Positions 24,652-64,000 of a stretch of DNA of 64,000 nt are shown here, piece by piece. The notes under the pieces were generated by a model that had not been told where the DNA came from, did no database searches, and saw nothing but the letters and a program-made list of their open reading frames with translations. Origin of the DNA: Bugula neritina (Eukaryota; Animalia; Bryozoa); contig OZ037770.1 in the NCBI GenBank assembly GCA_964035545.1, positions 4,496,662 through 4,560,661 of the forward strand, written 5' to 3'. Made by a program: the position numbers and the translations under genes. Each line of letters starts with the position of its first letter. The stretch's first letter is position 1.

Positions 24652-24980
24652 GTTATGGAATCTACAGGAGTTACAGATACTAGACATATCAGAGAATAAC
24701 TTCACCAGTCTATACCATCTTCAGTGTGCAGACTGAAAAAATCTGCTAGAACTCAAGTTAATCTTCAATGACTGCATGACATCGTTGAATCAGCTGAGAT
24801 ACTATACTGCTAACACATCTTAGTTCTTTATACTAGGTGGTTGTAATGCTCTTATACAGCTCCTCCACTATAAACCTGTAAGAAAGAGGGTTAAATGCTG
24901 TGAGACAATACTACACACATTTGGCTAAAGGAGCAGGTAGAAATATTCCATTCGCTACAATAACTGTATTGTGAAAGACC
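24652..24980 (+). pseudogene. Frameshifted relic of an LRR-Roc terminal exon, paralog of the exon starting at 63259
   Basis: Aligns at nucleotide level with 63259-63580 (TCAGAGAATAA.TTCACCAGTCT, CCATCTTCAGTGTG, CTAACACATCTT, CTCCTCCACTA, CAATACTACACA, GGTAGAAAT.TTCCATT.GC.ACAATA). Same phase-2 acceptor; contains indels and stops; breaks off at the P-loop. Confidence 0.85.
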
Positions 24981-32197: not shown

Positions 32198-33157
32198 ATG
32201 GAGACTGAAAATGCTGAAACTCAACCACCGGCAATCGAAGGTGAGCGTAGAGACAATGCTGTAGAGACAATGCCTGTTAACCATGTAGTAGAGGAACGAA
32301 GGGTTCCGCGAGAACTAGTTGAATACCGCTACAGGTTAAAGGCGCCCACCTTCACGGGTGAAGAGGAGGTGGAACAATTTATCCAAGAGTTTAGCGACGT
32401 AATGGACGTCGCTCAGTGGCCCCCTAGGGTGGCCCTGCTGAAGCTTAGAATGGCATTGATGGACAAAGCCAAGCCCTATGGGCTGGGCGTAGACATTGAT
32501 AATATCTTTGCTTCTCTGCGGGCCCGTTTTGGCCTCTCGACTACAGATGCCAGGGCCCGATTACAGAGGTTGCGGCGTGATCCCCGCACCCCGCTGCGGG
32601 AGCATGCCACCGCGGTCATGAAGCTGGCACAGATCGCGTACAGCGACTTGCCCCCAGTCAACCGCGAGAGGTACACCCTCGACGCTTTCATAGCATCTGT
32701 CGACGATCTGGGTCTCCACCACCAGTTTCTAGCTAGGGGAGTCACCACCGTTGAAGATGCTCTGACTGAGGGGGAAGCTTACCTCCTAGCTAACCAAATG
32801 CATAAAAGTCGCGGAAGCTCCCGCCAAGTGGAGATAGACCGCGCAGACACGGCCGCGGGACAAGGGGAGGAAACCCCCGCCGCGGCTGCCGTGTCCCAGT
32901 TGGCGACGGCATCAAAAGTCACTCAACTGACAGACATGCTAGCCAAGCTGATAGCAACACTGACCCCACAAAACCCAGTGAGTACCGCCCCTGAGCCCAT
33001 GCGGCCATTGGCGCCGCCACAGGGAGAAACAGTCAGTTTTTGCTGGGAGTGCGGAAATCAAGGACATTTCCGCCGATATTGTCCCTTCCTAAATCAGGGG
33101 TTAAACTACCGCGGCCCGCAGATGTTCCCACCTTCCGCGGGCCGACGAAACCTCTAG
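32198..33157 (+). CDS. gag: Gypsy Gag with CCHC knuckle
   Basis: 319-aa ORF right after the PBS; KAPTFTG capsid start; CWECGNQGHFRRYC. Confidence 0.92.
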   Translation: METENAETQPPAIEGERRDNAVETMPVNHVVEERRVPRELVEYRYRLKAPTFTGEEEVEQFIQEFSDVMDVAQWPPRVALLKLRMALMDKAKPYGLGVDIDNIFASLRARFGLSTTDARARLQRLRRDPRTPLREHATAVMKLAQIAYSDLPPVNRERYTLDAFIASVDDLGLHHQFLARGVTTVEDALTEGEAYLLANQMHKSRGSSRQVEIDRADTAAGQGEETPAAAAVSQLATASKVTQLTDMLAKLIATLTPQNPVSTAPEPMRPLAPPQGETVSFCWECGNQGHFRRYCPFLNQGLNYRGPQMFPPSAGRRNL

Positions 33158-36100: not shown

Positions 36101-37668
36101 GACTCCGGTGGTATTGGCCGCAGATGGAGCGTGACGTCCGGCTCAGAGTCAAACAGTGTGAGATCTGCCAGGCCAGTAAGCATAGCCGCCCCCCTGGTGA
36201 AGCAGGACGGCGGAGGCTATATGCTGGTAGGCCCTGGCAAGTAGTCGCTGTAGACCTGGTCGGACCCATGCCCCTGACCCCCAGAGGCAATAATTGGATC
36301 CTAGTACTAACCGACCACTTTACTAGGTGGGCGGATGCTCTGGCTATCCCAGATGCATCAGCCCCAACAGTGGCCAGGGCACTAGACCAACATGTATTCT
36401 GTTATTTTGGGCTTCCCGAACAGATACACTCTGATCAAGGCGCTCAATTCCAGTCTCAACTGATGAGCGACCTTTGCCACCTCTGGGGAGTAAATCAGAG
36501 CAGGACCACCCCCTACCACCCTCAAGGTAACGGGGTGGTGGAGCGCAACAACCGGATGTTAGGTGATGCGCTCCGGAGTCTCCTCCTTGGACGAAGTCAA
36601 GAGGAATGGGATACGGTGTTGCCGCAAGTCATGCGTGCATACCGTAGCACCCCACACACCAGTACTGGTGAGACCCCAAACCTCTTGATGCTCGGGAGAG
36701 AGACTCGTGTCCCTGACCATCTCACCTATCACGTTCCAGAGCAAGATAACTCAGTCCACGAGTATGCCAGTGAACTAGTGGAACGGATGAAGGCCGCACA
36801 CGAGATACTGCGTCAACAGCAGTGGAAGGTGCGGCACGAAGATTCCGATGAACCACCCCTCTATCAAAGAGGAGATAAGGTGTGGATGGTCAATTACCGT
36901 AGGCGCCGCGGACAGGCTGATAAGCTGAAGCCTAAGTTCGTAGGCCCCTACGTGGTCGTCGAGGCTATGCCCAATCATACGTACAAGATTGAGCGCTCAG
37001 GACAGGTGTCTATCCAGAATGAGTCTCGCTTGAAACCGTATTGGGCTAGCCCCGGCGGAGTGGGAGAAGCCCCCCCGTTGTTAGAGCCCAGGAGGCAGAC
37101 AACAACGCGCGGGCGACGGCGGCATGGACCTGAATACGAAGTGGTCATACCGCGGGAAGAAAACTTGGTGAGAGAGGAGCGGCAGCTTCTGGCAACAGAA
37201 GCGTGTCCGCCACCGCCAAGTCTAATTCCATCACTTCCAGAAACCGAGCCGGTTCCGGAAGTGCAAACCCCCACGGAGGGAGGGGCTCCATCCGGAGAAC
37301 AAGAAGAGGTGACTGCTGACGGTGAAGTAGAGACGCCATTAGAGGCCCCTACTAACGAACCGGCAAGCGTGTCACCCCCCCTAGAAAGGGGACAGCGTAC
37401 GAGGCAACCCCCCGCATACTTGAAGGACTTCGTATGTGACTGCGTTAAAAGCGGCACACATGAAAGTCTAGGGGAAAACCGTACGAGAAAAGAATCGAGC
37501 AAATGTGGGAGTTGTCAACACCACGGAAATATCAACTTTTGTATCGGCGGAAGTAGGAACAAAATTCATCCGCCGGGTGCACAAAGTCTTAATCACGCAC
37601 CCCAACCACGTTGCTCGATCTTTTCATACGCTGATGCAGTCAAGAGTAGATGTGTTTCTAAGCAGTAG
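33040..37668 (+). CDS. pol: Gypsy Pol (PR-RT-RNaseH-IN) in the -1 frame relative to gag
   Basis: LIDSG (protease), VYLDD (RT), TDAS (RNase H), H..H..C..C and DLVGP..SDQG..VER (integrase), GPY motif. Uninterrupted ORF. Confidence 0.97.
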   Translation: MLGVRKSRTFPPILSLPKSGVKLPRPADVPTFRGPTKPLGKKKRRSPRRAPRTGNQQWQQPRRTSKGLRPAAAFSMPLHNRFTGLQVQESGWEHTKVAEKPASAPPRPTYHRPKRPPSRPKAREVLPARVRPEGRVQVQPHGNSYFLPGKLEGKAVTFLIDSGCTTNLLSRQLFDTLSARVRGEMEAYEGEYGTLADGSCLPFYGIIELTGRVRDQTIQETFIVSQLKEDAILGMPFLKRHGCHIDFSRSAMMMSGRELACVDKFGCPLVGGVQVVRNRTIPGRSRATIHCRVNSSRISGLGVVEGAHEKIQLASSLNQLTEQGEILVQCVNPFTEPIKLPAGSMLGRFHSVQEGDVGPSLGDATEAPPRHPIQGRGAVPTHLRELYETASGGCASNRERQAMAKLLRDYGDVFSSGEHDVGLTGIVRHEIPLTAGTVPVRQPTRRLGPEKEKEVSRQVRDLLDRGLIEPAHSAWSSPVVLVRKKDGSWRFCVDYRKLNSVTIQDAYPLPRIDESLDALAGSKYFSTLDLLSGYWQVPLSPDAQEKAAFITRDGLWKWKVLPFGLTSAPATFQRLMEQVLSGLHWKTLLVYLDDVIVISPDFETHVSRLQEVFERLRGAGLKLKPSKCALLQPEVKYLGHVVGRNGVATDPEKVRAVEDWVTPQDLTGLRAFLGLVGYYRQYIPDFAGIAQPLNRLTAKGVTWQWTPVEQEAFDRLKGCLLTAPILAYPDPTLEYILDTDASDQNVGAVLSQVQEGREVVVAYYSKSLSPAERNYCTTRKELLAVIKSVKHFRPYLYGRKFRLRTDHASLIWLCRRAEPSSQVARWLEILAEFSYRIEHRPGKRHSNADGLSRRPDGGCKQCLNIERRDGGPPRCELETLAHHGVPFDWDQGQLRQRVDESPEDIQNLRANPVLAGNVRELRKLQEELPGVVADIYRAKREGRRPSEERIRQGCAEFRLYCQRWDSLRIGQDGLLTISLAASGRHPERKRVVCPTAIRRELIWDTHKQAHAGVKRVMSKLRLRWYWPQMERDVRLRVKQCEICQASKHSRPPGEAGRRRLYAGRPWQVVAVDLVGPMPLTPRGNNWILVLTDHFTRWADALAIPDASAPTVARALDQHVFCYFGLPEQIHSDQGAQFQSQLMSDLCHLWGVNQSRTTPYHPQGNGVVERNNRMLGDALRSLLLGRSQEEWDTVLPQVMRAYRSTPHTSTGETPNLLMLGRETRVPDHLTYHVPEQDNSVHEYASELVERMKAAHEILRQQQWKVRHEDSDEPPLYQRGDKVWMVNYRRRRGQADKLKPKFVGPYVVVEAMPNHTYKIERSGQVSIQNESRLKPYWASPGGVGEAPPLLEPRRQTTTRGRRRHGPEYEVVIPREENLVREERQLLATEACPPPPSLIPSLPETEPVPEVQTPTEGGAPSGEQEEVTADGEVETPLEAPTNEPASVSPPLERGQRTRQPPAYLKDFVCDCVKSGTHESLGENRTRKESSKCGSCQHHGNINFCIGGSRNKIHPPGAQSLNHAPQPRCSIFSYADAVKSRCVSKQ

Positions 37669-37692
37669 TTCAAACCATTTCACATATTCAGT

Positions 37693-38769
37693 ATGTCTTA
37701 CGACAACAGATCGTGGGGTGAGTTAACTATATCTTAATACGAAACTAGATTGCATCGCTCAGCTCTGACTCACTGAGTCAATCGAGCTGGAGATAGGTTA
37801 GTGAAATACCGTAGTAAGAACTTAGTTTGACTTAGAGATTTTTATAATCTCATTGCAATACGGTTCTGTCTGACTATTCACTATCATTAATCTCTACGAG
37901 GTAACTGAATTAGGAGTTGCCAAGCTGTTCAAGCTGACAACACAGCAGTGTAATGTACTAACACTGTTGAAACTTTTTCAGATTACACTCGACCCGCTAC
38001 AACCAGGGTACGGGATAGAACACTTCCCGCTCCGTATCCGGAGGACTATGCTAGTGGTGACCGGCCTGAGCCACTACGCCGCCGTTGGCGGTGGGTGTCT
38101 CCACAAACCGAAGAAGAAATAGAAACAGCCTGGGGGTCCAGAGGACGGACGAGATGCCAGATCTGTGGTGAAGATTGCGCCTCTCACCGCTCCCTTAAAC
38201 TACACGTCAATGCCCATCTCCTACTGACCTTCTGCCCCTGCGGGTACAATGATGTGTATCCTTACCCCGTCACCAGACACAGAGCGGCGGGCTGTTTCCC
38301 TGGAGAAAACTATGTGGTCGACGCTAAGCTGTACCCGGAGTTCCTCACATATATACGACCCCTGGTAAAGAAGGCCATGCTACTAGCCGTTCTATCCTCG
38401 GGGTTCCAAAGTGTGTTAGACAACGCCCGCCAACAATCCCCGTTGGTGTCTGACCGCCCTCCAATTACCTACACCCCCGAGGAAACTACATATCCAGAAG
38501 AAGGAGAGATCTCCCCTACCCCGGCGAAGAGACGGACCAGGTCCCCCAATCCACCATTACGCCGCAGACGGACACCGTCCCCAGACCCAGTACGACTAGC
38601 TACAGTAGAAGAACGCCTCCTACGATTACAAGAAGAGTTCACCCAGCTGGCGCCAGATCTACTCAACACTACCACAGGACTCTTCCAGCTGAAGGGATCC
38701 GTATGCCGTATGAAACGGAAACTGCGTACATGCCAAGCCAAGCACCGGCGTGCCCAACAAGGACTCTAG
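37693..38769 (+). CDS. Gypsy accessory ORF3: zinc-finger-like plus coiled-coil protein, predicted two exons (37693-37717 and 37982-38769), 270 aa
   Basis: ATG 37693, donor GTGAGT 37718, branch TACTAAC 37956-37962, acceptor TTTTTCAG ending 37981; splicing keeps frame. CQIC..HVNAH..FCPCG..RH...C motif. Homolog at 55714-56547. Confidence 0.72.
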
Positions 38770-43071: not shown

Positions 43072-43958
43072 GCACTAATATTCTACCTTACACTAATAGT
43101 CTACCTTACACTAATACTCTACCTTACACTAATAGTCTACCTTACACTAATACTCTACCTTACACTAATGGTCTACCTTACACTAATAGTCTACCTTGCA
43201 CTAATGGTCTACCTTACACTAATAGTCTACCTTACACTAATATTCTACCTTACACTAATATTCTACCTTACACTAATAGTCTACCTTACACTAATGTTCT
43301 ACCTTACACTAATAGTCTACCTTACACTAATATTCTACCTTACACTAATATTCTACCTTGCACTAATATTCTACCTTGCACTAATATTCTAGCTTACACT
43401 AATAGTTTACCTTACACTAATATTCTACCTTACACTAACAATCTACCTTACACTAATATTCTACCTTACACTAATATTCTACCTTACACTAATAGTCTAC
43501 CTTACACTAATAGTCTACCTTACACTAATATTCTACCTTACACTAATAGTTTACCTTGCACTAATATTCTACCTTGCACTAATATTCTAGCTTACACTAA
43601 TAGTTTACCTTACACTAATATTCTACCTTACACTAATAGTCTACCTTACACTAATATTCTACCTTACAATAATAGTCTACCTTACACTAATATTCTACCT
43701 TACACTAATATTCTACCTTACACTAATATTCTACCTTACACTAATATTCTACCTTGCACTAATAGTCTACCTTACACTAATAGTCTACCTTACACTAATA
43801 GTCTACCTTACACTAATATTCTACCTTACACTAATATTCTACCTTACACTAATATTCTACCTTACACTAATATTCTACCTTACACTAATAGTCTAGCTTA
43901 CACTAATAGTCTAGCTTACACTAATAGTCTATCTTACACTAATATTCTACCTTGCACT
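43072..43958. repeat. 18-bp minisatellite, about 49 copies
   Basis: Unit CTACCTTACACTAATA(TT/GT) in direct tandem, no spacers. Confidence 0.97.
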
Positions 43959-45313: not shown

Positions 45314-48300
45314 ATGGCAACAGCTGGTGAGTGAATTTAAATACTCTTTTATTCACTTATTTCTTGGAAAATAGAAATATATAAACTCTGAAGATATGTT
45401 GATGTTGTGCCACCAGAATTTAATATAAATCTATAAAACTATTTTATTATCATGCACTACTCTCTATAGCACTGTTTTATGTCACCAATTAGCGTATTGC
45501 TTTGAGAATAGTAGAATAGATAATATTATGCAAGCAGTTGGGTTAGAGTTGTGTTATCTCAACACAATAAACACTGAACTATAAACTATACATTAAATGA
45601 TTATTTAGAAAGAATATAAAGCTATCCAATAAAATAAATATTAGTCATTGTTATGATTACTGAAATCTACCATATAATAAATTTATTCAAGCAGTAGATA
45701 TGACAGGTGTCACAGCGACATACATCACCTGCTAGCACTGTGTAATAATCACACTGTCACTGCATGATGTTACAGAGAAGATGAGAATCTGGTTCAGACA
45801 TTCTGGACAGCCACCTGTAAGCTGGTCAGATGTAAGGAGAGCTGATACCAAGTTATATACTACTGCTGAGGTGAAACGTGAAGTTGGGAGTTATTACATC
45901 ACAGATCTCAAGCTGAGAGGGAAAATTCCAAGTAACATTGGAGAGATTGCAGGTAAAGCCCTGTGTCTACATGTTTCTAACCTGACTGACAGAGCAAGTC
46001 TAGACAAGTGAGTGTCTATTAAAATAGCTGTGTAAATGTTAAACAAGTTCATTTATTAAATAATGATAATACTGCTATTTATGATGATGGATAAAATATA
46101 ATGGATAATATAATATAAAATATACCTGATTGAATACACCACTATAGTATACAGAGTACATACTACTATTTGTGTTATTTATTAAATAATAATGGATAAT
46201 AGACACTGAAGCTGAAGCATATTTTTGCTCATAATATATTCATACAGTATAATATAAATCAACATAGTAATATGTGCAACATTGTATGTAATCCAAATGA
46301 GCTTATAAAACTGCCTCTACTGCTACTTCATAATATATGCTGAATCTAAGCATGCTTTTGCTCATAATATATGCATACAACATAATATACATCAACATAG
46401 TAATATGTGCAACAATGTATGTAATTCAACTAAGCTTATAGTTGTATAGAAACTAGGAAGTGCAAAACTGCCTCTACTCGATATCACTGACTAAATCATG
46501 TTTTATGTATATATAGCTAAAAATATGAGTAATGCACAGTCTATAATATATTATACAAAAGACTATGTTATGCCCGCAACTGCAACTGCAAATGTTATTC
46601 AATATATTAATTTACAGAGCATTGTAGAGTGAGGCCTTGTGTACTATAAACTGACAGCTAAGCTTGCTAAATGAAGCTTCCTCTTCTCACCTACAACATA
46701 ATATTATAAGTGAAACTTTTTGTGTTTTTGTGTTAACAATAAGTGCGTTTCTTGCATATTTTACTTAGTTAAATACACAAGTAGCATGATATAATAGTAT
46801 ATATTATTTTGATATGGTAGACATAAATACATGACACACTTTATATTACAGTCTATGTAAGCTGACTCAGTTAGAGAAACTAGACATAGGATGGAATCAT
46901 CTCGACATAGTACCAGAATTTGTGTCATCACTCACATCAATTAAAGAGTTGAATATGGAAAACTGTAAATTATCTACTCTACCTGAGAGGTTTGTGGAAC
47001 ACAGTCCTTTTTGTTTCAAACACTAAATAATTCACATGTTGATATAATGCGTACCAAGTATTGCTAATTAGTATGTCACTATGTGTTGAAAAGCATAAAG
47101 CTATAAATTACGTACTTCTTGAGGCTATACGATATTAGAGTTTTTGAAAACTTGAAAATAAATATGTTTCAGTTATCTGGCATTACATTTCCTATTGCTA
47201 TAAAACCTTTTTAACAAATATTATAACACCCAATTGTAGTTTACTATAGTGTGTATTTCTCATCAAATGGTTGTTACTTTGAATATGCCTTAGCGTAATA
47301 AATTTGCTACTTGGATATTTTACCTGATGGAATATGCAGTGCATGCTATGATACAGTAGACTAAATATATCACATACTTTATATTACAGCCTTATTAAGC
47401 GGACTCAGTTAGAAAAACTATACATAGGATTGAATCCTCTCTACACAGTACCAGAAGTTGTGTCATCACTCACTTCACTGAAAGAGTTGAATATGTGGGA
47501 ATGTAATTTATCTACTCTACCTGAGAGGTTTGTGTGCCACAACAAATTTTATATATCACTTTTAACATTCAATAATTGTTATTCTGAAGCAGAATTTCAA
47601 CACAGTAAATACTACATTGAGATGTTTATACTTTTTCTCTGCAAAAACTACATATGAATCTCACAGTTTCTGGGGATATTGTCAATTAGCACACTGTCTA
47701 GAAGTTTCCTCTGCTTCACAAGTTCTTTTATAGTGTTTCTATATCTTTTTGAATATTTCCCATGATAGGTTGACTGGGCTGTTTTTCAGTAATCGCTTTA
47801 ATAACTCTTTTCATTATAATATAACTATAGCTACTTCTGTACACATAATTGGTATATATTATATTATTATAGTAACACAGCTTCTTATTATTGTTTAATT
47901 TGAATACACAAGTGCTATATACAGTATTTATATAATATTATCCTGGTACAGTGAATTACATATATTACACACTTTATATTACAGTCTGTGTCAGCTGACT
48001 CAGCTAGAGAAACTTGAGCTAGCAAGAAATTCTCTCCACACAGTACCAGAAGTTGTGTCATCACTCACAGCACTCAAAGAGTTGAATATGGGGAGCTGTA
48101 AATTATCTACTCTACCTGAGAGGTTTGTGGAACACAGTCTTTCTTGTTTCAAACACTCAATAATTCACATGTTGATATAATGCTTACCAAGTATTGCTAA
48201 TTAGTATGTCACTATGTATTGTTGAAAAGCATAAAGCTATAAATTACATATTTCTTGAGGCTATATGATATTAGAGTTTCTCAAAACTTGAAAATAAATA

Positions 48301-51300
48301 TGTTTCAGTTATCTGGCATTACATTTCCTATTACTATGAAACCTTCTCCAATAAATACTATAGCACTCGCTTGTAGTTTACTAGAATCTAGTTCACATTA
48401 AATGCTTATTAGGTTTCGGTATTTCACTTTGAATTTGCTTTGTTGCAATAAATATGTTTCTTGGATATTTTACTTGATTGAATACACAAGTAGTATATAC
48501 TATTACCATGATACAGTGGATTAAACACGTAACGCACTTTATATTACAGCCTGTGTAAGCTGACTCAGTTAGAGAAACTGGACATAGGATGGAATCCTCT
48601 CAACACAGTACCAGAAGTTGTGTCATCGCTCACATCACTTAAAGAGTTGTATATGGGGAACTGTAAATTGTCTACTCTACCTGAGAGGTTTGTGGAGCAC
48701 AGTCTTTCTTGTTTCAAACACTCAAAAATTCACATGTTGTTATAATGCTTACCAAGTATTGCTAATTAGTATGTCACTATGTATTGTTGAAAAGCACAAA
48801 GCTATAAATTACATATTTCTTGAGGCTATATTGAATTAGAGTTTCTCATTACTTGAAAATAAATATGTTTCAGTTATCTGTCATTACATTTCCTATCGCT
48901 ATAAAACTTTTTTAACAAATATTATAGCATCCACTTGTAGTTTACTATAGTGTGTATTTCTCATTAAATGGTTATTAGAGCCTTCTGTACTTTACTATGA
49001 ATATGCCTTAGCGTAATAAATTTGCTATTTGGATATTTTACTTGATTGAATATGCAGTGTTTGTTATGATACAATAAATTAAATATATCACATACTTCTT
49101 ATTACAGCCTGAGCCAGCTGACTCAGTTAGAGAAACTGTACATAGCAGTGAATCCTCTCAACACATTACCAGAAGTTGTGTCATCACTCACATCACTTAA
49201 AGAGTTGAATATGATAGGCTGTGAATTATCTACTCTACCTGAGAGGTTTGTGTGTCACTACAAATTTTATATCATTTTTAACGTTCAATAATTGTTATTT
49301 TGTAGGAGAATTTCAGCACAGTAAATACTACATTAAGATGTTTATACTTTTTCTCTGCAAACCCCCATACGAATCTTAACGTTTCAGAGGATATTGTCAA
49401 TTAGCACACTATCAGTTGTATAGTTGATTATTATTCACACACTGAGTATATATAATAATTGAATACTTGTATGCTATTATAATAAACTGTTAACTTCTCA
49501 TGCTCTGCATGTAATATGCTACAATAAGTTGCTTGGTTGTTAAATTGTATATAGTTTTACCTGGTTGAAAACAAAATGTGAATACAGTATAAAGTTTTAT
49601 GGTAATGCAGACTACATATATATGTGAATATAGTGAATATAGTGAATATAGTATAAAATATTATAGTAATGCAGACCACATATATATCATACACTTTATA
49701 TTACAGCCTGTGTCAGCTGACTCAGTTAGAGAAACTAGACATAGGATGGAATCCTCTCAACACAGTACCAGAAGTTGTGTCATCACTCACATCACTTAAA
49801 GAGTTGAATATGAGGAGCTGTAAATTATCTACTCTACCTGGGAGGTTGGTATTGCACAATATTATCTCTGTTTCAAACATTCAATATTTCACTTCTTTAA
49901 TGCTTATCAAGTAGTGTTATGCTATTTTATTATATATTGCCAACGTATGTTAAAAAACCTATAGATATGCATTTTCGAACTTGTCCAATAGTTTGTGCTA
50001 AGGTGGAAATAATACAGCCTCATGGTATGCTATTGTATATCCTTATATCACAAGAACCTTTTGTAATGAATAATAAAACAGCCATCCGCAGTGTACTGGC
50101 AATCATGGTAATAATCGAATCTTTCTTAGCTTCTTGCGTCAATCACTTTGACTATCCATTACTGCAATGAATTTTTTTCTGAACTTTTTACCTGACTGAC
50201 TGTGCTTAGCAATATAACATGTACAGTGTATATTATTATGACACAGTAGACTACATATATCATACCCTTTATAATTATTGCAGTCTATGCCAGCTGACTC
50301 AGTTAGAGAAACTAAACTTAAGAGGAAATCCTCTCAACACAATACCAGAAGTTGTGTCATCGCTCACATCACTTAAGGAGTTGGATATAAAGAGCTGTAG
50401 ATTATCTACTCTACCTAAGAGGTTTGTGGAACACAGTCTTTCTTGTTTCAAACATTCAATAATTCACATGTTGATATAATGCTTACCAAGTATTGCTAAT
50501 TAGTATGTCACTATGTATAGTTGAAAAGCATAAAGCTATAAATTACAATTTTCTTGAGGCTATATTGTATTTGAGTTTCTCAAAACTTGAAAATAAATAT
50601 GTTTCAGTTTTCTGGCATTACATTTCCTATTGCCATAAAAAGTTCTTCAACAAATACTATAGCACCGCTTGTACTTTACTAGAATCTATTTCAGATTAAA
50701 TGTCTTTTACTTTAAATATGCCTTGTCAAAATAAATTTTTTTTGCATGTTATACCATATTGAATACACCACTGTAGTATACACAGTACATAATACTATCC
50801 TGATACAGTGGATTGCATATATTATGCACTTTATATTACAGTCTATGTCAGCTGACTCAGTTAGAGAAACTAAACATGAGAGATAATCCTCTCAACACAG
50901 TACCAGAAGTTGTGTTATCACTCACCTCACTTAAAGAGTTGTATATGTGGAACTGTGGTTTATCTACTCTACCTCAGAGGTTTGTGTGTTACAATAATTA
51001 TTTCTTTTGTTTTAAACATTCTATATTTCACTTCTTTAATGCTTCTCAAGTAGTGTTATGCTATGATATCATATATTGCCAACGTATGTTGAAAAACATA
51101 AACATGTATTTTTTTAACTTATCTAGTTGTTTGTCCTAATATAGAAATAATACAATTTTATAGTGAGCCATTGTATATCCTTATATCACAATACTTTTTG
51201 TAATCAAAAATAAAGCAGCCCTCTGCAGTTTACTGACAATCATGGTAATAATCGAATCTTTCTTAGCTTCTTGCGTCAAGCACTTTGACTATCCATTACC

Positions 51301-54300
51301 GGAATGAATTTTTTTTCTGCATTTCTTACTTGGCTGACTGTGCTTAGCAATATAATATGTACAGTGTATATTATTATGACACAGGAGACTACATATATCA
51401 TACCCTTTATAATTATTGCAGTCTATGCCAGCTGACTCAGTTAGAGAAACTAAACTTAAGAGGAAATCCTCTCAACACAGTACCAGAAGTTGTGTCATCA
51501 CTCTCATCACTTAAGGAGTTGGATATAAAGAGCTGTGAATTATCTACTCTACCTGAGAGGTTTGTGGAACACAGTCTTTCTTGTTTCAAACATTCAATAA
51601 TTCACATGTTGATATAATGCTTACCAAGTATTGGGAATTAGTATGTCACTATGTATAGTTGAAAAGCATAAAGCTATAAATTACAATTTTCTTGAGGCTA
51701 TATTGTATTTGAGTTCCTCAAAACTTGAAAATAAATATGTTTCAGTTTTCTGGCATTACATTTCCTATTGCCATAAAAAGTTCTTCAACAAATACTATAG
51801 CACCGCTTGTACTTTACTAGAATCTATTTCAGATTAAATGTCTTTTACTTTAAATATGCCTTGTCAAAATAAATTTTTTTTGCATGTTATACCATATTGA
51901 ATACACCACTGTAGTATACACAGTACATAATATTATCCTGATACAGTGGATTGCATATATTATGCACTTTATATTACAGTCTATGTCAGTTGACTCAGTT
52001 AGAGAAACTATACATAGGAGATAATCCTCTCGACACAGTACCAGAAGTTGTGTTATCACTCACCTCACTTAAAGAGTTGTATATGTGGAACTGTGGTTTA
52101 TCTACTCTACCTCAGAGGTTTGTGTGTTACAATAATTATTTCTTTTGTTTTAAACATTCTATATTTCACTTCTTTAATGCTTATCAAGTAGTGTTATGCT
52201 ATGATATCATATATTGCCAACGTATGTTGAAAAACATAAACATGTATTTTTTTAACTTATCTAGTTGTTTGTCCTAATGTAGAAATAATACAATTTTATA
52301 GTGAGCCATTGTATATCCTTATATCACAATACTTTTTGTAATCAAAAATAAAGCAGCCCTCTGCAGTTTACTGACAATCATGGTAATAATCGAATCTTTC
52401 TTAGCTTCTTGCGTCAAGCACTTTGACTATCCATTACCGGAATGAATTTCTTTTCTGCATTTTTTACCTTGTTGACTGTGCTTAGCAATATAATATGTAC
52501 AGTGTATATTATTATGACACAGGAGACTACATATATCATACCCTTTATAATTATTGCAGTCTATGCCAGCTGACTCAGTTAGAGAAACTACACATAGAAG
52601 GAAATCCTCTCAACACAGTACCAGAAGTTGTGACATCACTCACATCGCTTAAAGAGTTGGATATAAAGAGCTGTGAATTATCTACTCTACCTGAGAGGTT
52701 TGTGGAACACAGTCTTTTTTTTTAGTTTCAAATGTTCAATAATTCACATTTTGATATAATGCTTACCAAGTATTGGGAATTAGTATGTCACTATGTATTG
52801 TTGAAAAGCATAAAGTTATAAATTACATATTTCTTGAGGCTATATTGAATTAGAGTTTCTCATTACTTGAAAATAAATATGTTTCAGTTATCTGTCATTA
52901 CATTTCCTATCGCTATAAAACTTTTTTAACAAATATTATAGCATCCACTTGTAGTTTACTATAGTGTGTATTTCTCATTAAATGGTTATTAGAGCCTTCT
53001 GTACTTTACTATGGATATGCCTTAGCGTAATAAATTTGCTATTTGGATATTTTACTTGATTGAATATGCAGTGTTTGTTATGATACAATAAATTAAATAT
53101 ATCACATACTTCTTATTACAGCCTGAGCCAGCTGACTAAGTTAGAGAAACTATACATAGGAGGGAATCCTCTCAACACAGTACCAGAAGTTGTGTCATCA
53201 CTCACATCACTTAAAGAGTTGAATATGGAGAGCTGTGAAATATCTACTCTACCTGAGAGGTTTGTGTGTCACAACAAGTTTTATATATCACTTTTAACAT
53301 TCAATAATTGTTATTTTGAAGCAGAATTTCAACACAGTAAATACTACATTAAGATGTTTATACTTTTTCTCTGCAAAAACTACATATGAATCTCACCGTT
53401 TCTGAGGATATTGTCAATTAGCACACTATCTAGAAATTTCCTCTGCTTCACAAGTTATTTTATAGTATTTCTATTTCTTTTTGAATATCTCCCATGATAG
53501 GTTGACTGGGCTGTTTTTCAGAAGTCGTTTTAATAACTATTTTTATTATATTATAATTATAGCTACTTCTGTACACATAATTAGCATATATATTACATTA
53601 TTATAGTATCACAGTTTCTTTTTACTGTCTAATTGAATGCACAAGTGCTATATACAGTATCTACATAATAATATCCTGATACAGTGAATTACATATATTA
53701 TGCACTTTATATTACAGTCTATGTAAGCTGACTCAGTTAGAGAAACTAGACATAAGAGGAAATCCTCTCTACACAGTACCAGAAGTTGTGTCATCACTTA
53801 CATCACTTAAGGAGTTAAATATGGAAAACTGTAAAATATCTACTCTACCTGAGAGGTTTGTGAAACACAGTCTTTCTTGTTTCAAACACTCAATAATTCA
53901 CATGTTTTTATAATGCTTACCAAGTATTGTTAATTAGTTTGACAATATGTAGTGTTGAAAAGCATAAAGCTATAAATTACAATTTTCTTGAGGCTATATG
54001 ATATTAGAGTTTCTGAACACTTGAAAATAAATATGTTTCAGTTATTAGGCATTACATTTCCTATTGCTCTATAACCTTCTTTAAATAATCCTATAACACC
54101 TACTTGTGGTTTACTAGAATCTATTCCCCATTACATGCTTATTAGCTTTCGGTAGTTTACTTTGAATTTGTTTTGTTGCAATAAATTTGTTTCTTGAATA
54201 TTTTTCCTGATTGAATACACAAGTATGGTATAATATACAGTATATAATAATATCCTGATACAGTGGATTACATATATTATGCACTTTATATTACAGTCTA

Positions 54301-57300
54301 TGTCAGCTGACTGAGTTAGAGAAACTATACATAGGATCGAATCCTCTCAAAACAGTACCAGAAGTTGTGTCATCACTCACTTCACTTGAAGAGTTGGATA
54401 TGGGGAGATGTGAATTATCTAATCTACCTGAGAGGTTTGTGTGTCACTACAAATTGTACATCATTTTTAACGGTCAATAATTATTATTTTGTAGCAGAAT
54501 TTCAGCACAGTAAATACTACATCAAGATGTTTATACTTTTTCTCTGCAAACCTCCATATGAATCTCACCTTTACAGAGGATATTGTCAATTAGCACACTA
54601 TCTAGAAGATTCCCGACGTCACAAATAAGTTTATAGTATTCCAATATCTTTTTTGAAATGCTTCCCATGAGAGGTTGACTAGGCTTTTCTTAAGAAATTG
54701 TTTTATCAACCCTTTTCATTATATTATAATGATTGTTACTTCTGTACCCATAATTGGTATATATTGTAGTAATTTTAGTAATTACTAGTTTTGTGGGCTT
54801 CTAGCGAGCAATATCTTTATATTATCTTCCAATAATATCACGGCTTGTAACAGGAATGAATGATTTATTAATACGCAGTAAAAGTAGTAGCGAAACGATA
54901 CATCCAGTATCAAGGGTAAAAATATACATTTATCTTACACTAACTAGCTATCACACTCTGAGTATGGCTGCTATCTACATCCGGCGCCCTCCGCGCATCG
55001 CTGGGGGTCTCATGTGACGGATATCGGATTGGCTGGGGAGCACGTGGGATAACATACTACACTCCCCACTACACTGCCCCCCACCCCAGCAGGAAGCCCA
55101 CCTTCCTGATAATACCAAAATAAAAAAATAAAATAACAACAAAAAAACAATAAGATATCTGCATCACAAGATCAAAATTTATACTTAGGCCAACGGTTTA
55201 TTAAAAAAAAACATCTGGTTAAAATATAAAAATTAGGCACTATAAAACTAAGAGATTGTATCTGTACCAAGAGCTTTTTGTACGGCACCGAGAGATATGA
55301 TGTGTAGAGAGACGGTAAGTGAGGCACCACCTGCGGCGTAGATCAGGAGGACAGCTGGAAAGAGTTAGGGACAGGGAAATAGAGAGGGGAAAGAGAACGT
55401 CATCTACGACACTGGGGTTGTCACAAAGACGGGTGTCGGGGCAATGTGGAAGGTAGACACTCAGTCTTTATCATCTCTCTTGAGCTGGGCCACAGAGTCC
55501 CGGAGAGCCTTGAGTTCAGAAGCGGCGGCTGATATTCTAGACGCCAACCTCTCTCTCTCTAGTTCATGCATCCGTTGCTCCATCTCTCTTAGATTTCTAG
55601 CAACAGAGGAGTGGCGTTTGGGGATGAAGACTGCCATCGCCACTTACGAGAGGGTCGAGGGGAGACAGGTGAGGACGGGCATCATCTCTGGGGGACTTCT
55701 ATCCGTTGTAAGACTAGTCGGAGTACGATGTTGGGACGGGGCGCAGTGTGAGCGGGGGTGACGGGCGAGGTACCAGGAGCTTCCTAAGCCCAGGGGGTTT
55801 GGGGCAGGGTTCTTGGGTAATGGCACGGGGAGCGGGAAATTCTTGGCTCAGCCGTTCGTAACGAGCAGGGTCTGAGATGAATGGCTTGATGAGGCCGAGA
55901 AAAGTTGGGAAGGAAAGCTTGTCCACATTGTAGAGATGTCCAACGTGACACTCCATAGTCCTCTGGTGACGAAGGGTGTAGTCCCTGTGGTAGCTGTACT
56001 CCCCACAGGGGCAGAAGGTGGTGATGAAATGTTGATGGATGTGTACTCGGAGGCGGCGAGGTGTGGTGAAATGCTGTTGACACAGCCGGCAGGTGGTGCA
56101 GTTGTCGTTTCCTCTATCTTGTTGAATCATGTTCTCGGTATCCTGGGTAACCCAGCTAGACCGGGTTATGAGTATCTCCGGTAGTGTAGCGGAAGTAGGT
56201 TCCTTCTCCCAAGCCATCTCCAATGGTGGCATATCATCGTAGTTAGAAGAGCGAGTGATATCTGAAAGAGCAGAATTATTGTTAGATCGAATTTGATCTT
56301 TACAGCATAATTCTGATGACAATCGACTGTTACTAGTCTGAGAGTCATGCATATTTTTGTACGGCACTCGAGAGACTGTGTTTGGACGTGTAGACTGACT
56401 GAGAAACATTGTGTCAAGCTCCAGATCTAGTAGATCTCCGGCCATTGTTATGTCCTCGTCGTCTTTCACGTTTAGCCCAGTCTCCAGTAATTGTGATTCA
56501 ACCAGAGTGATTAAATCAGAATTAACTGATGTCAAACCCGTTTCCATAGATAGGAATACTAGGGCTAGGCAGGCTTACTTTGGAACTTGGTATTTGGAAT
56601 CATACTCAACGTTCAAGCTTGGATTTTAGTGGTTTTAGTATGTCTACCTTTGGTGATGTCAGCGTAAGAAAAGACTGGACAGCGTGTTTATTTCGCATGG
56701 CTAGAACTGTTTGCCCCGGGCGCAATAATTCCACCTAATACTCCGCCCTCGCAAAAGTTGATATTTTCGCGGTGTTCACAACTTCCTTCGTTTCGCTACC
56801 AGTTTCTCAGTACCGCACCCAGCTTGGCCTTCATGTCTGCCGCTTGTAACGCAGTCGCATACGAAGTCCCAAATATACTAGGGGTTGCCTAGTACGTTGT
56901 CCACTTTCCAAGGGAAGTGGTGTACTAATTGGGGGAGATGGTGTAGTCACTGCTCGTGGCGGTGTACTCACTGATGGACTGTTATGTTCCATCGGTGGCG
57001 TTTCCGGCCTACTATTGACTGCTGTATTATTTTCAAGATTTCCGGATACAGCCCTCCCCCGGGGGGTTTTGCACTTCCGGAGCTGAAACAGGTTCCGGAA
57101 GTGGTGGCGTTAGACTTGGCGCTGAGGGTGGTGGGCGCACTTCTGGTAACGGAAGTTGTCTTTCCTGCCTCACCAAGTCTTCTGCCCGCGGCATGACCAC
57201 TTCATACTCTGGTTCATGTCGTCGCCGCTAGCGCGTTGCTGTCTGCCTCCTGGGCTCTAACAACCGGGGGGGGGAAGGGGAAGTTCTCCAGCCGCACCTG

Positions 57301-60300
57301 GGCTAGCCCAATACAGCTTCAAGGGAGCCTCATTCTGGATAGACACCTGTCCTGAGCGCTCAAGCTTGTAGGTGTGATTGGGCATCACTTCAACTACCGC
57401 GTAGGGTCCCACGAACTTAGGCTGTAGCTTAGCCGCCTGTCCTTGACGCCTACGGTAGTTGACCATCCACACCCAGTCTCCAACTTTGTAGAGGGGTGGT
57501 TCCTCGGAGTCTTCTTTTCGCACCTGCCACTGAATTTCCCGTAGTATTGTGTGTGCGACCTTCATTTGCTTTACCAATTTGCTGACATACTCGTGGATGG
57601 AGTAGTCCTGCTCAGGAATGTGGTAGGTGAGGTCATCTGGCACCCTAGTCTTTTGAACGAGCATCAGGAGGTTAGGGGTCTCACCAGTACTGGTGTGCGG
57701 TGTGCTACGATAGGCCCGCATGACTTGCGGCAACACCGTATCCCATTCCTTCTGACTCCGGTCGAGAAGTAGACTGCGGAGTGCATCGCCCAGCATCCGG
57801 TTGTTGCGCTCCACCACTCCGTTTTCCTGGGGGTAGTATGGAGTGGTCCTGCTTTAATTTACTCCTCAGAGGCAGCAAAGATCGCTCATCAGCTGAGACT
57901 AAAATTGAGCCCCCTGGTCCGAATGTATATGCTCAGGCAAGCCAAAATAGCAGAATACATGTTGGTCCAGCACCCTGGCCACTGTTGGAGCGGACGCATC
58001 TGGGATAGCCAGAGCGTCTGCCTACCTAGTGAAGTGGTCAGTTAATACTAGGATCCAACTGTTTCCTCTGGGGGTTAGGGGCATGGGTCCGACCAGGTTG
58101 ACAGCCACCACTTGCCACGGCCTTCCAGCATATAGCCTCCACCGTCCCGCTTCACCAAGGAGACGACCATGCTTGCTGGCCTGGCAGATTTCGCACTGTC
58201 TTACTCTGATTCGTACATCACGCTCCATGCTAGGCCAGTACCACCGGAGTTGTAATTTGGTATGCACCCTCTGGGCTCCTGCGTGAGCCTGTTTGTGGGT
58301 GTTCCATACTAACTCCCGGCGGATAGCAGCTGGGCAGACTACCCTCTTCTTCTCGGGGTGTCTGTTGCTTGCGGCCAATGTCATGGTCAGCAGATAATCC
58401 GGCCCGATCCGCAGGGAGTCCCAACGTTGACAATACAGCCGTAATTCGGCGCATCTCTGCCTCAGCTTTTCTTCATTGGGTCGTCGCCCTTCTTTCTTGG
58501 CTTGGTACACGTCGGCTACCACTCCCAGAGGGTTTTCCTGGAGTTTTCGTAGCTCCCTAACGTTACTGGCTAAGACAGGGTTGGCGCGGAGGTTTTGTAC
58601 TACCTTCGGAGGCGTACCCGCCTTCTGTTGGAGTTGACCCTGGTCCCAGTCATACTCTATCTCAGGGTGGTCCAGTGCCGTCAACTAGGACCGCAGGGGA
58701 CTTCCATCCCTCTTCTCAATGTTGAGACACTGCCTACACCCTTCGTCTGGTCGCCGGCTCAGTCCGTCTGCATTGCCGTGCTTTTTACCGGGTCGATGTT
58801 TGATCCGGTAAAATAACTCGGCCAGGACCTTGAGCCATCTCGCGACCTGGCTAGACAGTTCTGCTCTCTTGCACAACCAAATCACAGAGGTGTGGTCCGT
58901 ACGCAGCCGGAACTTCTGGCCGTATAGATAAGGTCTAAAGGTCTTCACTGACTTGATTACTGCCAGCAGTTTCTTGCGGGTAGTGCAGAACTGTCGTTCA
59001 GTGGGTGAGAGAGACTTGCTGTAGTAGGCTACACTACTTCACTACGTTCCTGCACTTGCGACAGCACAGCGCCAACATTCTAGTCACTGGCGTCCGTGTC
59101 TAGGATATACTCCAGAGCGAAGTTTGGGTAGGCCAAGATAGGAGCCTCCAGCAGACGGCCCTTGAGGCAGTCAAACGCCCTCTGTTTGACGGAAGTCCAC
59201 TTCCAGGTCACCCCCTTTGCGGTGAGCCGATTTAACGGCTGTGCCACCCCTGCAAAGTCTGGTATGTATTGCCTGTAATACCCTACCCGCCCCAGGAAAG
59301 CCTGAAGTCCGGTCAAATCATGGGGGTAACCCAGTTTTCCACAGCTCGTACTTTTTCAGGATCAGTCGCCACGTAATGACGGCCGACGATGTGCCCCAGG
59401 TACCTCACCTCCGGCTGCAAGAGAGCGCACTTGGAGGGTTTGAGCTTCAGGTTGGCACCTCTGAGTCGTTCAAACACCTCCCGCAGACGACTGACGTGTG
59501 TCTGGAAGTCTGGGGAGATCACGATGACTTCATCGAGGTAGAGTAGCAGTGTCTTCCAGTGGAGCCCACTGAGGACCTGTTCCATGAGCCTCTGAAAGGT
59601 GGCAGGGGCGGAGGTCAACCCAAAGGGTAGTACTTTCGACTTCCACAGTCCGTCCCGTGTGATGAACACCGCCTTCTCCTGGGCGTCGGGACTCAGAGGG
59701 ACCTGCCAATAACCGCTCAGCAAGTTTAGTGTACTAAAGTACTTGCTGCCGGCCAGGGCGTCCAGAGATTCATCAATCCGGGGTAAAGGATAGGCGTCCT
59801 GTATGGTTACGCTATTTGGTTTGCGGTAGTCCACGCAGAACCGCCAACTGCCGTCTTTCTTCTGGACCAGGACAACCGGCGAGCTTCATTCACTATGTGC
59901 TGGCTCCTTCTCTTTTTCCGGCCCCAACCTCCTCATGGGTTGCCAGGTAGGGAGAGTCCCCGCAGCCAACGGTATCTCATGACAGACAGCTCTAGTCAGG
60001 CCCAAGTCATGGTCTCCGCTGCTGAACATTTCGTTGTACTCGCATAGCAACTTGGCCATAGCCTGTCGCTCCCCGTTGCTCGCGCAGCTATCACAGGACG
60101 ACTTGTACAACTCTTGGACATGTAGCGGGACGGTCCCCCGCCCTGGAGACGGGCGCTGTTGGGGACCTTCCGTCGCATCTCCCAGCGACGGCCCTATATC
60201 CTTTTCCTGAACAGAATGGAAACGGCCCAGTACAGACCCTGATGGTAGCTTTACCGCTTCTGAGAAGGGGTTGACACACTGCATCAAGATTTCTCCTCGT

Positions 60301-63300
60301 TCAGTCAGCCGGTTAAGACTACTGGCGAGTTGGAATCTTGCGTGCGCGCCTTCGACAACTCCCAACCCAGAGATCTGGCTACTGTTCACTCTACAGTAAA
60401 TGGTAGCCCGGGTACGGCCTGGTATTGTACAGTTCCGTATTACCTGCACGCCTCCCACTAGGGGACGGCCAGACTTGTTGACACAAGTGAGCTCCTTGCC
60501 GGCCATCAGTATAGCTGACTTGTTAAAGTCAATGCGGCAACCATGTCGCTTCAAGAATGGCATCCCTAGTATAGCATCCTCCTCTAGTTGGCTGATGACG
60601 AAGGTTTCCTGGATGGCCTGGTCGCGGACGCGTCCAGTCAGCTCTATAATACCGTAGAATGGGATACGCGACCCGTCTGCAAGAGTGCCAGGTTCCCCGG
60701 TATAGGGAGCTAATTCTCTCCTCTCCTTAGGGGGAAGAGCGTCAAAGACCCGACGGCTGAGGAGATTCGTGGTACACCCGGAGTCTAACAGGAAAGTGAC
60801 AGACCTGCCGGCCACCTTCCTGGTAAGAAATAGCTATCTCCATGTGGTTGTACCCTTACTCCCCCAGCGTGCTCGGTCTCGACCTGGTGGGGCAGTGCCC
60901 GTTTCGCCCGCGGTTTTCGGGGCCTCTTAGGGCGAGGTTTTCTCCGCGGAGGGGCGATTGGTTCCCCTCCGATGTCCGGATGGACCTTGCCAGCCGGCTC
61001 CATCTCTGGTAGCCAGCTGAAGCGGTTAGCGAGAGGCAGTGTGAATGGTTCCAGTCGCCGCTCTGGTCGACTGGTCCAACGGGGTGCCTGCCACTCGTGG
61101 GGGGTATACCGCGCTGTCCCTACGAACGCCCTGCGGTATCCACCTCGTGGTTCCTTCATTCTCGGCCTGCGGGGTTTGGAGGCGTCCGCGAGCCGTGGAA
61201 GTTTAATCGTTTCCCAGATTGCGGGCAACTCGAGCGGAGATTTCCTCGTGTGCCGCATCTTCAACATAAAGCAGCTGGCCTCAGAACCTCTACCCTCGGC
61301 CTCAAAGGTCCTTGGGTGGGTTCTGTTTGGGTTGGCACAGGCTAGGATCGCCACCAACTGTTCTAACATGGCTATCATGCGGTCCACCTCCGCTTCAAGA
61401 GGAAGGGTGGTGGTGGCGGCAGCCACTTGGACTGGATGGTCCGGTCCCGAAGTGATTTGTTGGGAGCTCACTTTAGCTCGATAGAATTGTTTGGCCAAGA
61501 TATAGGCCTCACCTTCATGCAGTGCATCCTCTATCGTAGTCACCCCTCTTGCATGAAGCTGGTGGTGTAAACCCAAATCATTGAGGAACTGTACAAAGGC
61601 GTCATAGGTGTAGTGTTCCCGGTGTGGTTCTGGCAAGTTGCTGTATGCGATCTGTGCCAGTCTCTTCACTAGGGTAGCATGATCCTGTAGTGGTGTGCGC
61701 ACTTCTTAGTGCAACCTTTGTGAACGGGCCCTGGCGTCCACAGCGGAGATGCCGAAACGGGCCCGCAGCGCAGCAAAGATCCCGTTTACACTGGATCCCA
61801 GTCCGTACGACTTGGCTTGTTTCGTCAGCGCCGTCCGTAGTTGAATCAGGGCTACTCGTGGTGGCCATCGAGTGATGGCCATGACTTCGTTGAATTCTCG
61901 AATAAATTGTTCAACATCTTCTAGGCCCGTAACATACTACACTTCCCACTACAACATTATATATTTTTATAGTAACACAGTTTCTTATTATTGTCTAATA
62001 AGTAAGAAAACTACTTTCTTATATTTATAATGACATCACATTGCAACATAATTGACTCAATCAACCGTATTGTGTAAAGCTCATTAGTAAAAAATCACTT
62101 AGTAGATTATATAGTATGTTTGATTTAGGTAATTCAAGTTCTACTTTTAATTATTTTGAAATAAAAGATCTGGTTTTATATTGTAAACCGAAGAGGACAA
62201 AAAAATTATTAAATATTGCAACTTTTTTTTTCATGCTCTCCTTTGGTTATCTATCTCCAATTCTCAGTGTAATAGAAGCCAATTTTTATCTTATTCCTGT
62301 TCTCAAACAGCCTGTTAATATATTGTTTCATAATTAATTTACAATTCTAAATTACGAATCAACTGGCCTTTAAAGGTGCAACATGTTCCTGCAAGCCGAT
62401 GACTTTCCAGAATTGTATTCTCTCATAGTGAAATAATTCACAACTTCTATTTCCTGTCTAGAAACTATAATACATTTATTAGGGTAATTAGTGAGAGGTT
62501 GTGGCAGAAGTATTTTATTTTACTTGAAATTACTTTAATGCTTTGCGTAGATGTTTCAGAGCTGTACTGTGTTTCTATTTTATGATAAATTGCATGTATT
62601 ATGGCACATAAAACAATATTCCTTATAATGATAACATCCATATAGTAGAATATCAGTGTGAACAGTTACTCAGTGATCAGAAGTGTCAGAAGTATTTTAT
62701 TTTCACTTCACATTACTTTAATGCCTTATGCAGATGCCACAGAGCTGTAGCCTACCATGTTCCTATTTGCTGATAACTGTATTATGGCACATTATACTAG
62801 GAATTTTCTACTCTGTGGTATAAAATACCATTCTTTCTAGTAGAATAACAGTGTGAACAGTTACTCAGTTATCTGCCATATAGAAAAAGATGATATATAG
62901 TATTACATGTAGGTTGTTGTCTTTTATGACAGTACTTAGTACAGATGTAGCACTTTTCTTACCAAATATATACTTACAATTATACTGTTACATTATATAT
63001 CTTTATAAAATACTTAAAATGTTATGCATCGTATATAATATGATACTCGTACATAATCGTAACTTAGACATATTTGTTTTCTTTCCTTAATTAATGTACT
63101 AATTCAAGGTATTGTATATAAACTTGCTATAGTAACTGCAACTTAGTACTATATTATGTGTAATTATTGTTATACTAATATTGGGTATCTTTATGAAAAC
63201 TATTATATCAATTACCTGTATAGCTAGGTCTAATAATAGAAATATTATATATTATTAGAATACAGAAATTAAAGAAGTTACAGAAACTCACAATTTCAGA

Positions 63301-64000
63301 GAATAAATTCACCAGTCTCCCATCTTCAGTGTGTGCATTGAGTAATCTGTACACACTGGATATATCCGAGAACAGATCCATGACATCCTTGAACCCGGAG
63401 ATACTACAGCTAACACATCTTGGGTCTTTCCATACATATGGATGTGATGCTCTTAAATCTCCTCCACTAGAAGTCTGTAAAAGAGGACTGGATGCTGTGC
63501 GACAATACTACACAGACTTGGTTAAAGGCGCTGGTAGAAATCTTCCATTTGCGACAATAGTCATGCTGGGGAACACCATGGCAGGAAAAACCAGTCTAAT
63601 CAGAACATTACAGAGCACTGACAAGAAGAGAGTTCTGACTGACAGAAGTCCTAATGCAGAGTATGATGAAACTACAAAAGTGTTTATGGTGGAAGAGGTG
63701 GAAGTAAATGGTACAACTCTTCGTTTCATAGATATGGGAGGCCAGGAGGTCTACCATATCACATACCATTTAACACTGAGACAAAATTGCGTACCAGTAA
63801 TTGTAGTCAACATGGAGCAGTATGATAAGATTTCAAATGAGTCTACAGACAGAGAGGCTGTGAGAAAGTTGGCTTTTGACTTCATGTCTCACCTCTATCT
63901 CACTCATCCAACTCTTGGTCCGCCTACCCTTGTCTTCACACACAAAGATAAGTTTTCGAGTGAAATTTTCCAACAGCTTCGAAAAAAGTTTCTTGAAGTG
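45314..64000 (+). CDS. LRR-Roc (ROCO-family, MFHAS1/MASL1-like architecture) GTPase; continues beyond the window
   Basis: Start gccATGg at 45314. Exons 45314-45326, 45776-46007, fourteen 138-nt LRR exons (46852-54434) and 63259-64000+, all phase-compatible. The last exon has about 3 LRRs, the [18 protein letters not shown] hinge, P-loop GNTMAGKT (63569-63592), DMGGQEVY and THKD. Candidate 5'UTR exons end at 40389 and 43003. COR domain is expected downstream but not seen. Confidence 0.92.
46852..54434 (+). repeat. Tandem array of 14 exon+intron units (about 540-600 bp), each exon encoding two 23-aa LRRs
   Basis: Exons: 46852-46989, 47390-47527, 47985-48122, 48550-48687, 49108-49245, 49707-49844, 50284-50421, 50842-50979, 51422-51559, 51980-52117, 52560-52697, 53122-53259, 53718-53855, 54297-54434. 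Consensus [45 protein letters not shown]; all open. Confidence 0.96.
54765..61953 (-). mobile_element. Decayed Gypsy element, antisense in the last LRR intron of the ROCO gene
   Basis: 3' LTR 54765-55073 (TGTAGT...ACTACA), PPT from 55074. Fragmented gag/pol highly similar to the intact element. Only about 24 bp of the 5' LTR remain (61930-61953). Flanks ATAT and ACAT; host intron sequence resumes after 61953. Confidence 0.93.
55461..56547 (-). pseudogene. Accessory ORF3 homolog of the decayed Gypsy (zinc-finger-like plus frameshifted coiled coil)
   Basis: [20 protein letters not shown]....C..Y.VD...P.FL..I.P aligns with 38095-38769. Coiled-coil piece at 55461-55643. Confidence 0.75.
62500..62870. 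repeat. Diverged tandem duplication, about 180-bp unit x2, intronic
   Basis: CAGAAGTATTTTATTTT..ATTACTTTAATGC..CAGAGCTGTA..TAGTAGAATA.CAGTGTGAACAGTTACTCAGT occurs twice. Confidence 0.7.

Follow-up and report, generated by a model that had tools for sequence, protein, structure and literature searches.

In NLR inflammasomes and the apoptosome, in plant NLRs and in the VLRs of lampreys, a repeat-based sensor is combined with a nucleotide switch and a proximity-activated effector, or diversity is laid out on the concave face of the repeats. Closer to the subject of this work are the brown-algal (Ectocarpus) ROCO genes with leucine-rich repeats (LRRs), which lie in gene clusters, carry their LRR cassettes on exons that are shuffled, and have been described as being under positive selection at residues of the concave face; their cassettes are 72-nt exons for a single LRR each, and alternative splicing has been reported (Zambounis 2012, PMC3341825; Teng 2024, PMC11378527). 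In bacteria, predicted AP-GTPase counter-invader systems comprise fast-evolving N-terminal LRRs, the AP-GTPase (Roc), COR and a C-terminal effector, possibly a caspase, in several copies per genome (Kaur 2021, PMC8195603). Here, we describe a gene of the bryozoan Bugula neritina that joins LRR cassettes, Roc, COR and a caspase in one predicted chain. The gene begins within a 64,000-nt window (assembly GCA_964035545.1, contig OZ037770.1, positions 4,496,662 to 4,560,661 of the forward strand), belongs to a large family, and bears hypervariable cassette codons under diversifying selection.

The gene consists of 24 exons, which together encode 1762 residues in 5289 nt (Table 1). Domain searches were run for each exon, and the joined model, assembled for the frame check, has canonical splice sites and 0 internal stops. 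An earlier sequence-only reading had described a start codon at position 45314 and 14 exons of 138 nt, open and in phase 2-2, lying between a unique N-terminal exon and a Roc GTPase exon. The start codon and the 14 exons were confirmed, all of the latter being bounded by AG/GT and free of stops; both tetrad lists given for the repeats agree with the translation, and the Roc exon reaches the Pfam Roc gathering score. The N-terminal exon turned out to be single within its gene but not in the genome, where it has 62 matches; the scanned part of this cap gave no Pfam match. Each cassette encodes two LRRs of 23 residues, with about 30 LRRs in the whole protein. The distance from the last cassette to the Roc exon amounts to 8.8 kb because a decayed Gypsy element fills most of it. 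Reading downstream for COR and an effector domain, as had been suggested, we found COR in the Roc exon itself and a fused caspase as the last domain of the gene, which extends 4.2 kb beyond the window end.

The cassettes are 87% identical to one another, so that their framework is near-invariant, compared to about 66% for the adjoining intron ends. Variation is concentrated in eight codons (11, 13, 14, 18, 34, 36, 37 and 39), and 53 full-length cassettes carry 49 distinct eight-residue signatures. Variable x positions of LxxLxLxxN point to the concave binding surface of the LRR arc. The sequence-only reading had all x positions of LxxLxLxxN/C varying; this is true of the last three x of each xxLxLxx strand (codons 11, 13, 14 and 34, 36, 37) but not of the first two (8, 9, 31, 32), which are nearly invariant, and codons 18 and 39 vary as well. 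In the comparison of the site models M2a and M1a (2dL 181), the class with a ratio of nonsynonymous to synonymous rates (dN/dS, omega) of 6.5 comprised exactly the eight hypervariable codons, and the signal was also significant in each half-exon by itself. Pairwise dN/dS for the six strand-end codons was about 2 with local dS and about 4 with the dS of all sites. For Roc-COR, dN/dS of 0.16-0.37 indicated purifying selection. The site models show diversifying selection on the eight cassette codons.

To see how the arrays change, we read five family genes in full, the focal gene (g1) among them; they contain 7, 14, 4, 16 and 13 cassettes. Paralog gC, a recent duplicate, lies 310 kb from the focal gene and is collinear with it over 15.9 kb at 96%. 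In matched slots the exons of the two genes differ at 67 of 966 positions (6.9%) and the introns at 56 of 2623 (2.1%; p 6e-11), and for cassettes 8-12 the nonsynonymous divergence is about 26/511 (~5%) versus 22/2186 (1%) in the introns. Many of these differences are covered by exact tracts of 47-91 nt that occur in third cassettes, some of them in other genes, indicating that part of the change was templated. Moreover, distances measured in one half of the cassette do not correlate with those in the other (r 0.04), and for 29 of 54 cassettes the closest other cassette belongs to a different gene. Cassettes 7/9 and 8/10 are the most recent duplicates within the array; they share introns about 1-2% different, their exon changes being mainly nonsynonymous. 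The focal array as a whole is mosaic in composition: most of its introns and the Gypsy element agree with gC at 98-99%, but from the Roc exon onward the agreement is only 92%, and gD is closer there; the Gypsy element is present in gC (1-3% different) and absent from gD. In the focal gene, the stretch between this element and the Roc exon yielded no remnant of a cassette; a remnant does occur in paralog g0. In gC, cassette 9 (L020, C6:4857556) bears an in-frame 9-nt deletion leaving 129 nt, and cassettes 5 and 6 are identical. Cassette number therefore varies among paralogs, and tracts are exchanged between cassettes, a pattern consistent with gene conversion and unequal crossing-over of the ordinary germline kind, accompanied by selection.

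To this extent, the modular sensor proposed in the sequence-only reading is borne out in part, namely by the diversifying concave-face codons, the gain and loss of cassettes between paralogs, the exchange between cassettes, the large family and the brown-algal parallel. It is doubtful that combinatorial exon skipping or somatic conversion adds diversification within a colony or individual, which would make an anticipatory intracellular repertoire wired to a caspase via a GTPase switch.

The genome searched comprises 216 Mb, the window contig being designated C6. The 3′ end of the cassette occurs 340 times in it, compared to once for a reversed control, so the array is not a product of chance. 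A genome-wide count of paralogs, likewise suggested earlier, gave at least 77 Roc-COR exons on seven contigs, chiefly in clusters on C6 (36) and C1 (28). The frame is open in 75 of the 77, two having internal stops, and each one is followed on the same strand by a caspase exon (median gap 1.6 kb). A further 50 caspase catalytic exons, including some on C2, C7 and C9, are without a scored Roc-COR partner, and 36 Roc candidates are unscored; the unpaired caspase exons may in part be more divergent members of the family. A decayed fragment of the Roc-exon 5′ end lies upstream of the focal gene and likewise of g0 and gC, and this repetition before three family genes is a mark of segmental duplication.

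The Roc domain scores 31.8-34 bits with Pfam Roc (cutoff 27) and possesses P-loop, DxxG and G4-like motifs. The COR of the focal gene matches Pfam COR-A under the cutoff (E 8e-4), and 33 of 61 relatives match COR-A at E 0.001. An AlphaFold model of the Roc exon, based on an alignment of 61 sequences, has a pLDDT of 92 and matches LRRK1/2 and CtRoco (E 1e-22 to 1e-19) as well as the isolated COR domain 3dpt (E 9e-10). Judging from profiles and the predicted fold, the protein is a true ROCO, in which COR directly follows Roc. A NACHT or NB-ARC ATPase was considered as the central domain, but the profile and structure matches place Roc-COR there, so the protein is no NLR. By reading, no predictor being used, no signal peptide or membrane segment was apparent in the model.

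The caspase exons match Pfam Peptidase_C14 and caspases in PDB, three of them covering profile positions 1-49, 50-128 and 173-205 (the last weakly, E 0.065). The focal gene has the S1 Arg (REGS), the His (THG) and the Cys (EACSG), an acidic intersubunit linker and p10 (SKR). THG and ACSG are conserved in 5/5 paralogs, and the His, the Cys and both S1 arginines are found in every copy read. As far as the sequence can tell, a caspase fold with the His-Cys dyad and with both p20 and p10 is present. Because Glu replaces the Gln preceding ACxG in four of the five copies read (the focal gene and three paralogs; one has Gln), the Asp specificity of the predicted caspase is uncertain.

Contigs from two probable RNA runs, aligned to the neighbouring paralog g0, cover the exons and leave the introns near zero, while two other runs cover introns. 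On g0, the probable-RNA contigs show cassette-to-cassette ends as well as linker-linker, linker-caspase and caspase-caspase joints; being short, they are compatible with normal splicing as well as with skipping of LRR exons. Transcription of the family is thus supported, on this paralog rather than on the focal copy, and RefSeq models from the bryozoan Watersipora independently join all the domains. In g0, a truncated cassette (L009:5474-5503) has the acceptor CGG for CAG, and at this point probable-RNA contigs of relatives break off in cassette sequence.

The anatomy of the gene, its open frame, the catalytic residues and the family size are all directly visible in the data. Taken together, they allow us to propose, with a probability of roughly 0.6, that the protein is a germline-encoded single-chain intracellular recognition receptor joined to a death protease, a sensor and executioner for defence that is one of at least 77. 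The intracellular sensor suggested earlier came without an effector; the fused caspase would complete it, so that a single chain would unite the sensor with the switch and the protease. In such a system, the near-invariant exon framework would supply the homology for ectopic gene conversion and unequal crossing-over, with no need for special machinery, the symmetric phase 2-2 exons would keep the frame on every gain, loss or swap, and changes on the concave side of the LRRs would be retained by selection. A ligand bound to the LRR arc may then shift the nucleotide state of Roc and the monomer-dimer balance of COR, in line with CtRoco, which alternates between monomer and dimer with its nucleotide (PMC5714945), and dimerisation may activate the fused caspase by induced proximity, such that the cell is killed or remodelled. 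The likely role would be defence against microbes or parasites, which fits the counter-invader function predicted for the bacterial architecture (PMC8195603).

The same selection signature would be expected if the LRR face recognised polymorphic molecules of self or of conspecifics and rejection or zooid degeneration were the work of the caspase, in the manner of heterokaryon incompatibility mediated by fungal NLRs. Bryozoans are colonial, and apoptosis in their allo-incompatibility has been noted (PMC8195603); at the same time, the lack of an apparent signal peptide or membrane segment on reading speaks against allorecognition or self-surveillance of this kind, and the numerous loci spread over seven contigs resemble a pathogen-receptor repertoire more than one histocompatibility locus, so that we regard it as possible but improbable. 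Somewhat less probable still is a non-lethal protein whose caspase is weak or inactive in many copies and which signals, serves as a scaffold or traps pathogen effectors as a decoy. The EACSG in place of QACxG in four of the five paralogs read fits this idea, but the retention of the catalytic residues and S1 arginines in every copy read, together with the QACxG of the Watersipora copies, does not. Mostly neutral turnover of repeats, driven by recombination together with a relaxed constraint on exposed residues, might be suspected in a transposon-rich duplicated cluster with segmental duplications, broken cassettes, two Roc exons with internal stops and a local dS raised at variable codons. 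It is very unlikely given that nonsynonymous divergence in cassettes 8-12 is five times that of the introns, that nearly all Roc-COR exons are open and that strong variation is confined to eight codons. Finally, g1 and gC are 96-98% identical across tens of kb, as uncollapsed haplotypes would be, but an assembly artefact behind the pair or the array is very unlikely: the 14 focal cassettes differ from one another by 5-30 nt and have distinct introns, gene order differs around g1 and gC, and their identity falls at Roc. Even if the two were alleles, haplotypes would differ in cassette number and content, which would support the claim of variability.

Several observations weigh against the defence receptor that we favour. 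Recombination inflates omega in site models, and the site-wise dN/dS analysis, which had been suggested as a check, gave high values for the eight codons but a pairwise value of only 0.9 for all ten concave x codons chosen a priori when their own dS was used. Recombination received no significant support from a four-gamete distance test (p 0.20). The probable-RNA contigs come from relatives at 88% identity or more and were aligned to the neighbour g0, where the cassette-to-Roc and COR-to-linker joints are not among the matches listed. The focal copy itself carries an insertion of 7 kb, and E takes the place of Q ahead of its ACxG. Furthermore, CtRoco is a dimer when empty or GDP-bound and a monomer with GTP (PMC5714945), so the proposed switch may run in either direction.

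The coordinates of the gene and of its surroundings are collected in Table 1. Sequence similar to the minisatellite preceding the start codon also lies 5′ of paralogs gB and gC. The largely intact Gypsy element of the window has decayed relatives in the cassette-to-Roc intron and 3′ of the gene. By eye, the ORF1 start of the LINE-like element resembles a DnaJ-domain motif, and an open reading frame (ORF) at 12889-13236 resembles the N-terminal exon of proline dehydrogenase; the stretch beside the latter is duplicated twice near gC.

Table 1. Features of the focal gene and its neighbourhood. Positions are those of the window; L006 is a numbering on the same contig, with L006:421 corresponding to window position 63259, and C6 gives contig positions.
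Feature	Position	Strand	Details
Exon 1 with start codon	45314..45326	+	13 nt, phase 1
Exon 2, N-terminal cap	45776..46007	+	232 nt, phase 2 at end
14 two-LRR cassette exons	46852..54434	+	138 nt each, introns 400-461 nt
Cassette starts	46852, 47390, 47985, 48550, 49108, 49707, 50284, 50842, 51422, 51980, 52560, 53122, 53718, 54297	+
Most recent duplicates within the array (cassettes 7/9, 8/10)	50284..52697	+
Decayed Gypsy-type retrotransposon in cassette-to-Roc intron	54782..61959 (about)	-	~7 kb, ORFs broken
Roc-COR exon	from 63259, in window to 64000 (whole exon L006:421-2423)	+	2003 nt; two LRRs, C-cap, Roc with P-loop, COR
Two linker exons	L006:2747-3170		beyond window, between COR and caspase exons
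Five caspase exons	L006:3435-5411		beyond window, end of gene, with stop
Decayed fragment of Roc-exon 5′ end	24652..24960	+
ORF resembling proline dehydrogenase exon	12889-13236	-
Stretch duplicated near gC	13.8-18.7 kb
LINE-like element	27355-31910	+	682-aa ORF1; endonuclease-reverse transcriptase ORF2 split over two frames
Largely intact Gypsy element	32198-38769	+	gag, 1542-aa pol, third ORF of ~224 aa
18-nt minisatellite	43073-43958		49 copies, 1.4 kb 5′ of start codon
Copia-type polyprotein ORF	C6:4576095-4580210	-	intact, 1372 aa, ~11 kb 3′ of gene

The named relatives of the gene are bryozoan, namely RefSeq proteins of Watersipora subatra with the complete LRR-Roc-COR-caspase order and partial models of Bugula neritina. 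Two Watersipora proteins, automatically named 'MFHAS1 homolog' (XP_067947674.1 and XP_067948342.1), have the full fusion and fall into the same Roc-COR clade as the focal family. The gene of the former, which we mapped, has phase-2 LRR exons that measure 45-51 codons, a single large exon for LRR-Roc-COR, and caspase introns at matching positions; its cassettes, however, have diverged from one another, whereas those of Bugula are homogenised. Database records of amphioxus MFHAS1-like proteins (e.g., XP_019627981.1) point to several genes of identical domain order, but in the one that was mapped LRR-Roc-COR occupies a single 1274-codon exon without cassette exons. The bryozoan and amphioxus fusions are probably independent, because the effector of the amphioxus family alternates between caspase, GT4, Death and OTU and because the family falls into a clade of its own in a Roc-COR tree, which was built from residues of the single Roc exon only and has long branches and unreliable deep nodes. 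A protein of the annelid Owenia fusiformis (P0224) is recorded as combining Bcl-2, caspase and Roc-COR domains.

The literature searched, with subscription journals mostly outside it, yielded no description of an animal ROCO-caspase family, bryozoans and amphioxus included, nor any described receptor family for the phylum; the genes reported here are a candidate immune or allorecognition receptor repertoire for bryozoans. If the proposal is true, animals can gate a caspase by a Roco GTPase, not a STAND ATPase, and can do so without adaptors; amphioxus would provide a convergent fusion and bacteria a precedent. The family would also offer a natural system for studying how the binding of a ligand by the LRRs is linked to dimerisation of Roc-COR, a question that also concerns LRRK2-type proteins, with a protease as the readout.

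Compared with NLRs and the apoptosome, the bryozoan protein has a GTPase in place of the STAND ATPase and no CARD or Death adaptor. In contrast to lamprey VLRs, which are assembled somatically into an incomplete gene, its germline gene is complete and in frame. With the bacterial AP-GTPase systems it shares the order of LRRs, AP-GTPase, COR and effector; those genes are intronless and their effector varies among copies, whereas the bryozoan gene is spliced, its caspase is constant and animal-caspase-like, and the variation resides in the cassettes. The likeness to the brown-algal ROCOs extends to LRR-Roc-COR, to symmetric LRR exons of equal length, to their variation in number and to selection on exposed residues. 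The exons here are 138 nt long and encode two LRRs, as opposed to 72 nt and one LRR there, and a caspase is added; caspases are unmentioned in PMC3341825 and PMC11378527, and three algal group 3 members have another peptidase domain (IPR009003). Thus, the bryozoan gene works like the shuffled ROCOs of brown algae but is not a member of that group.
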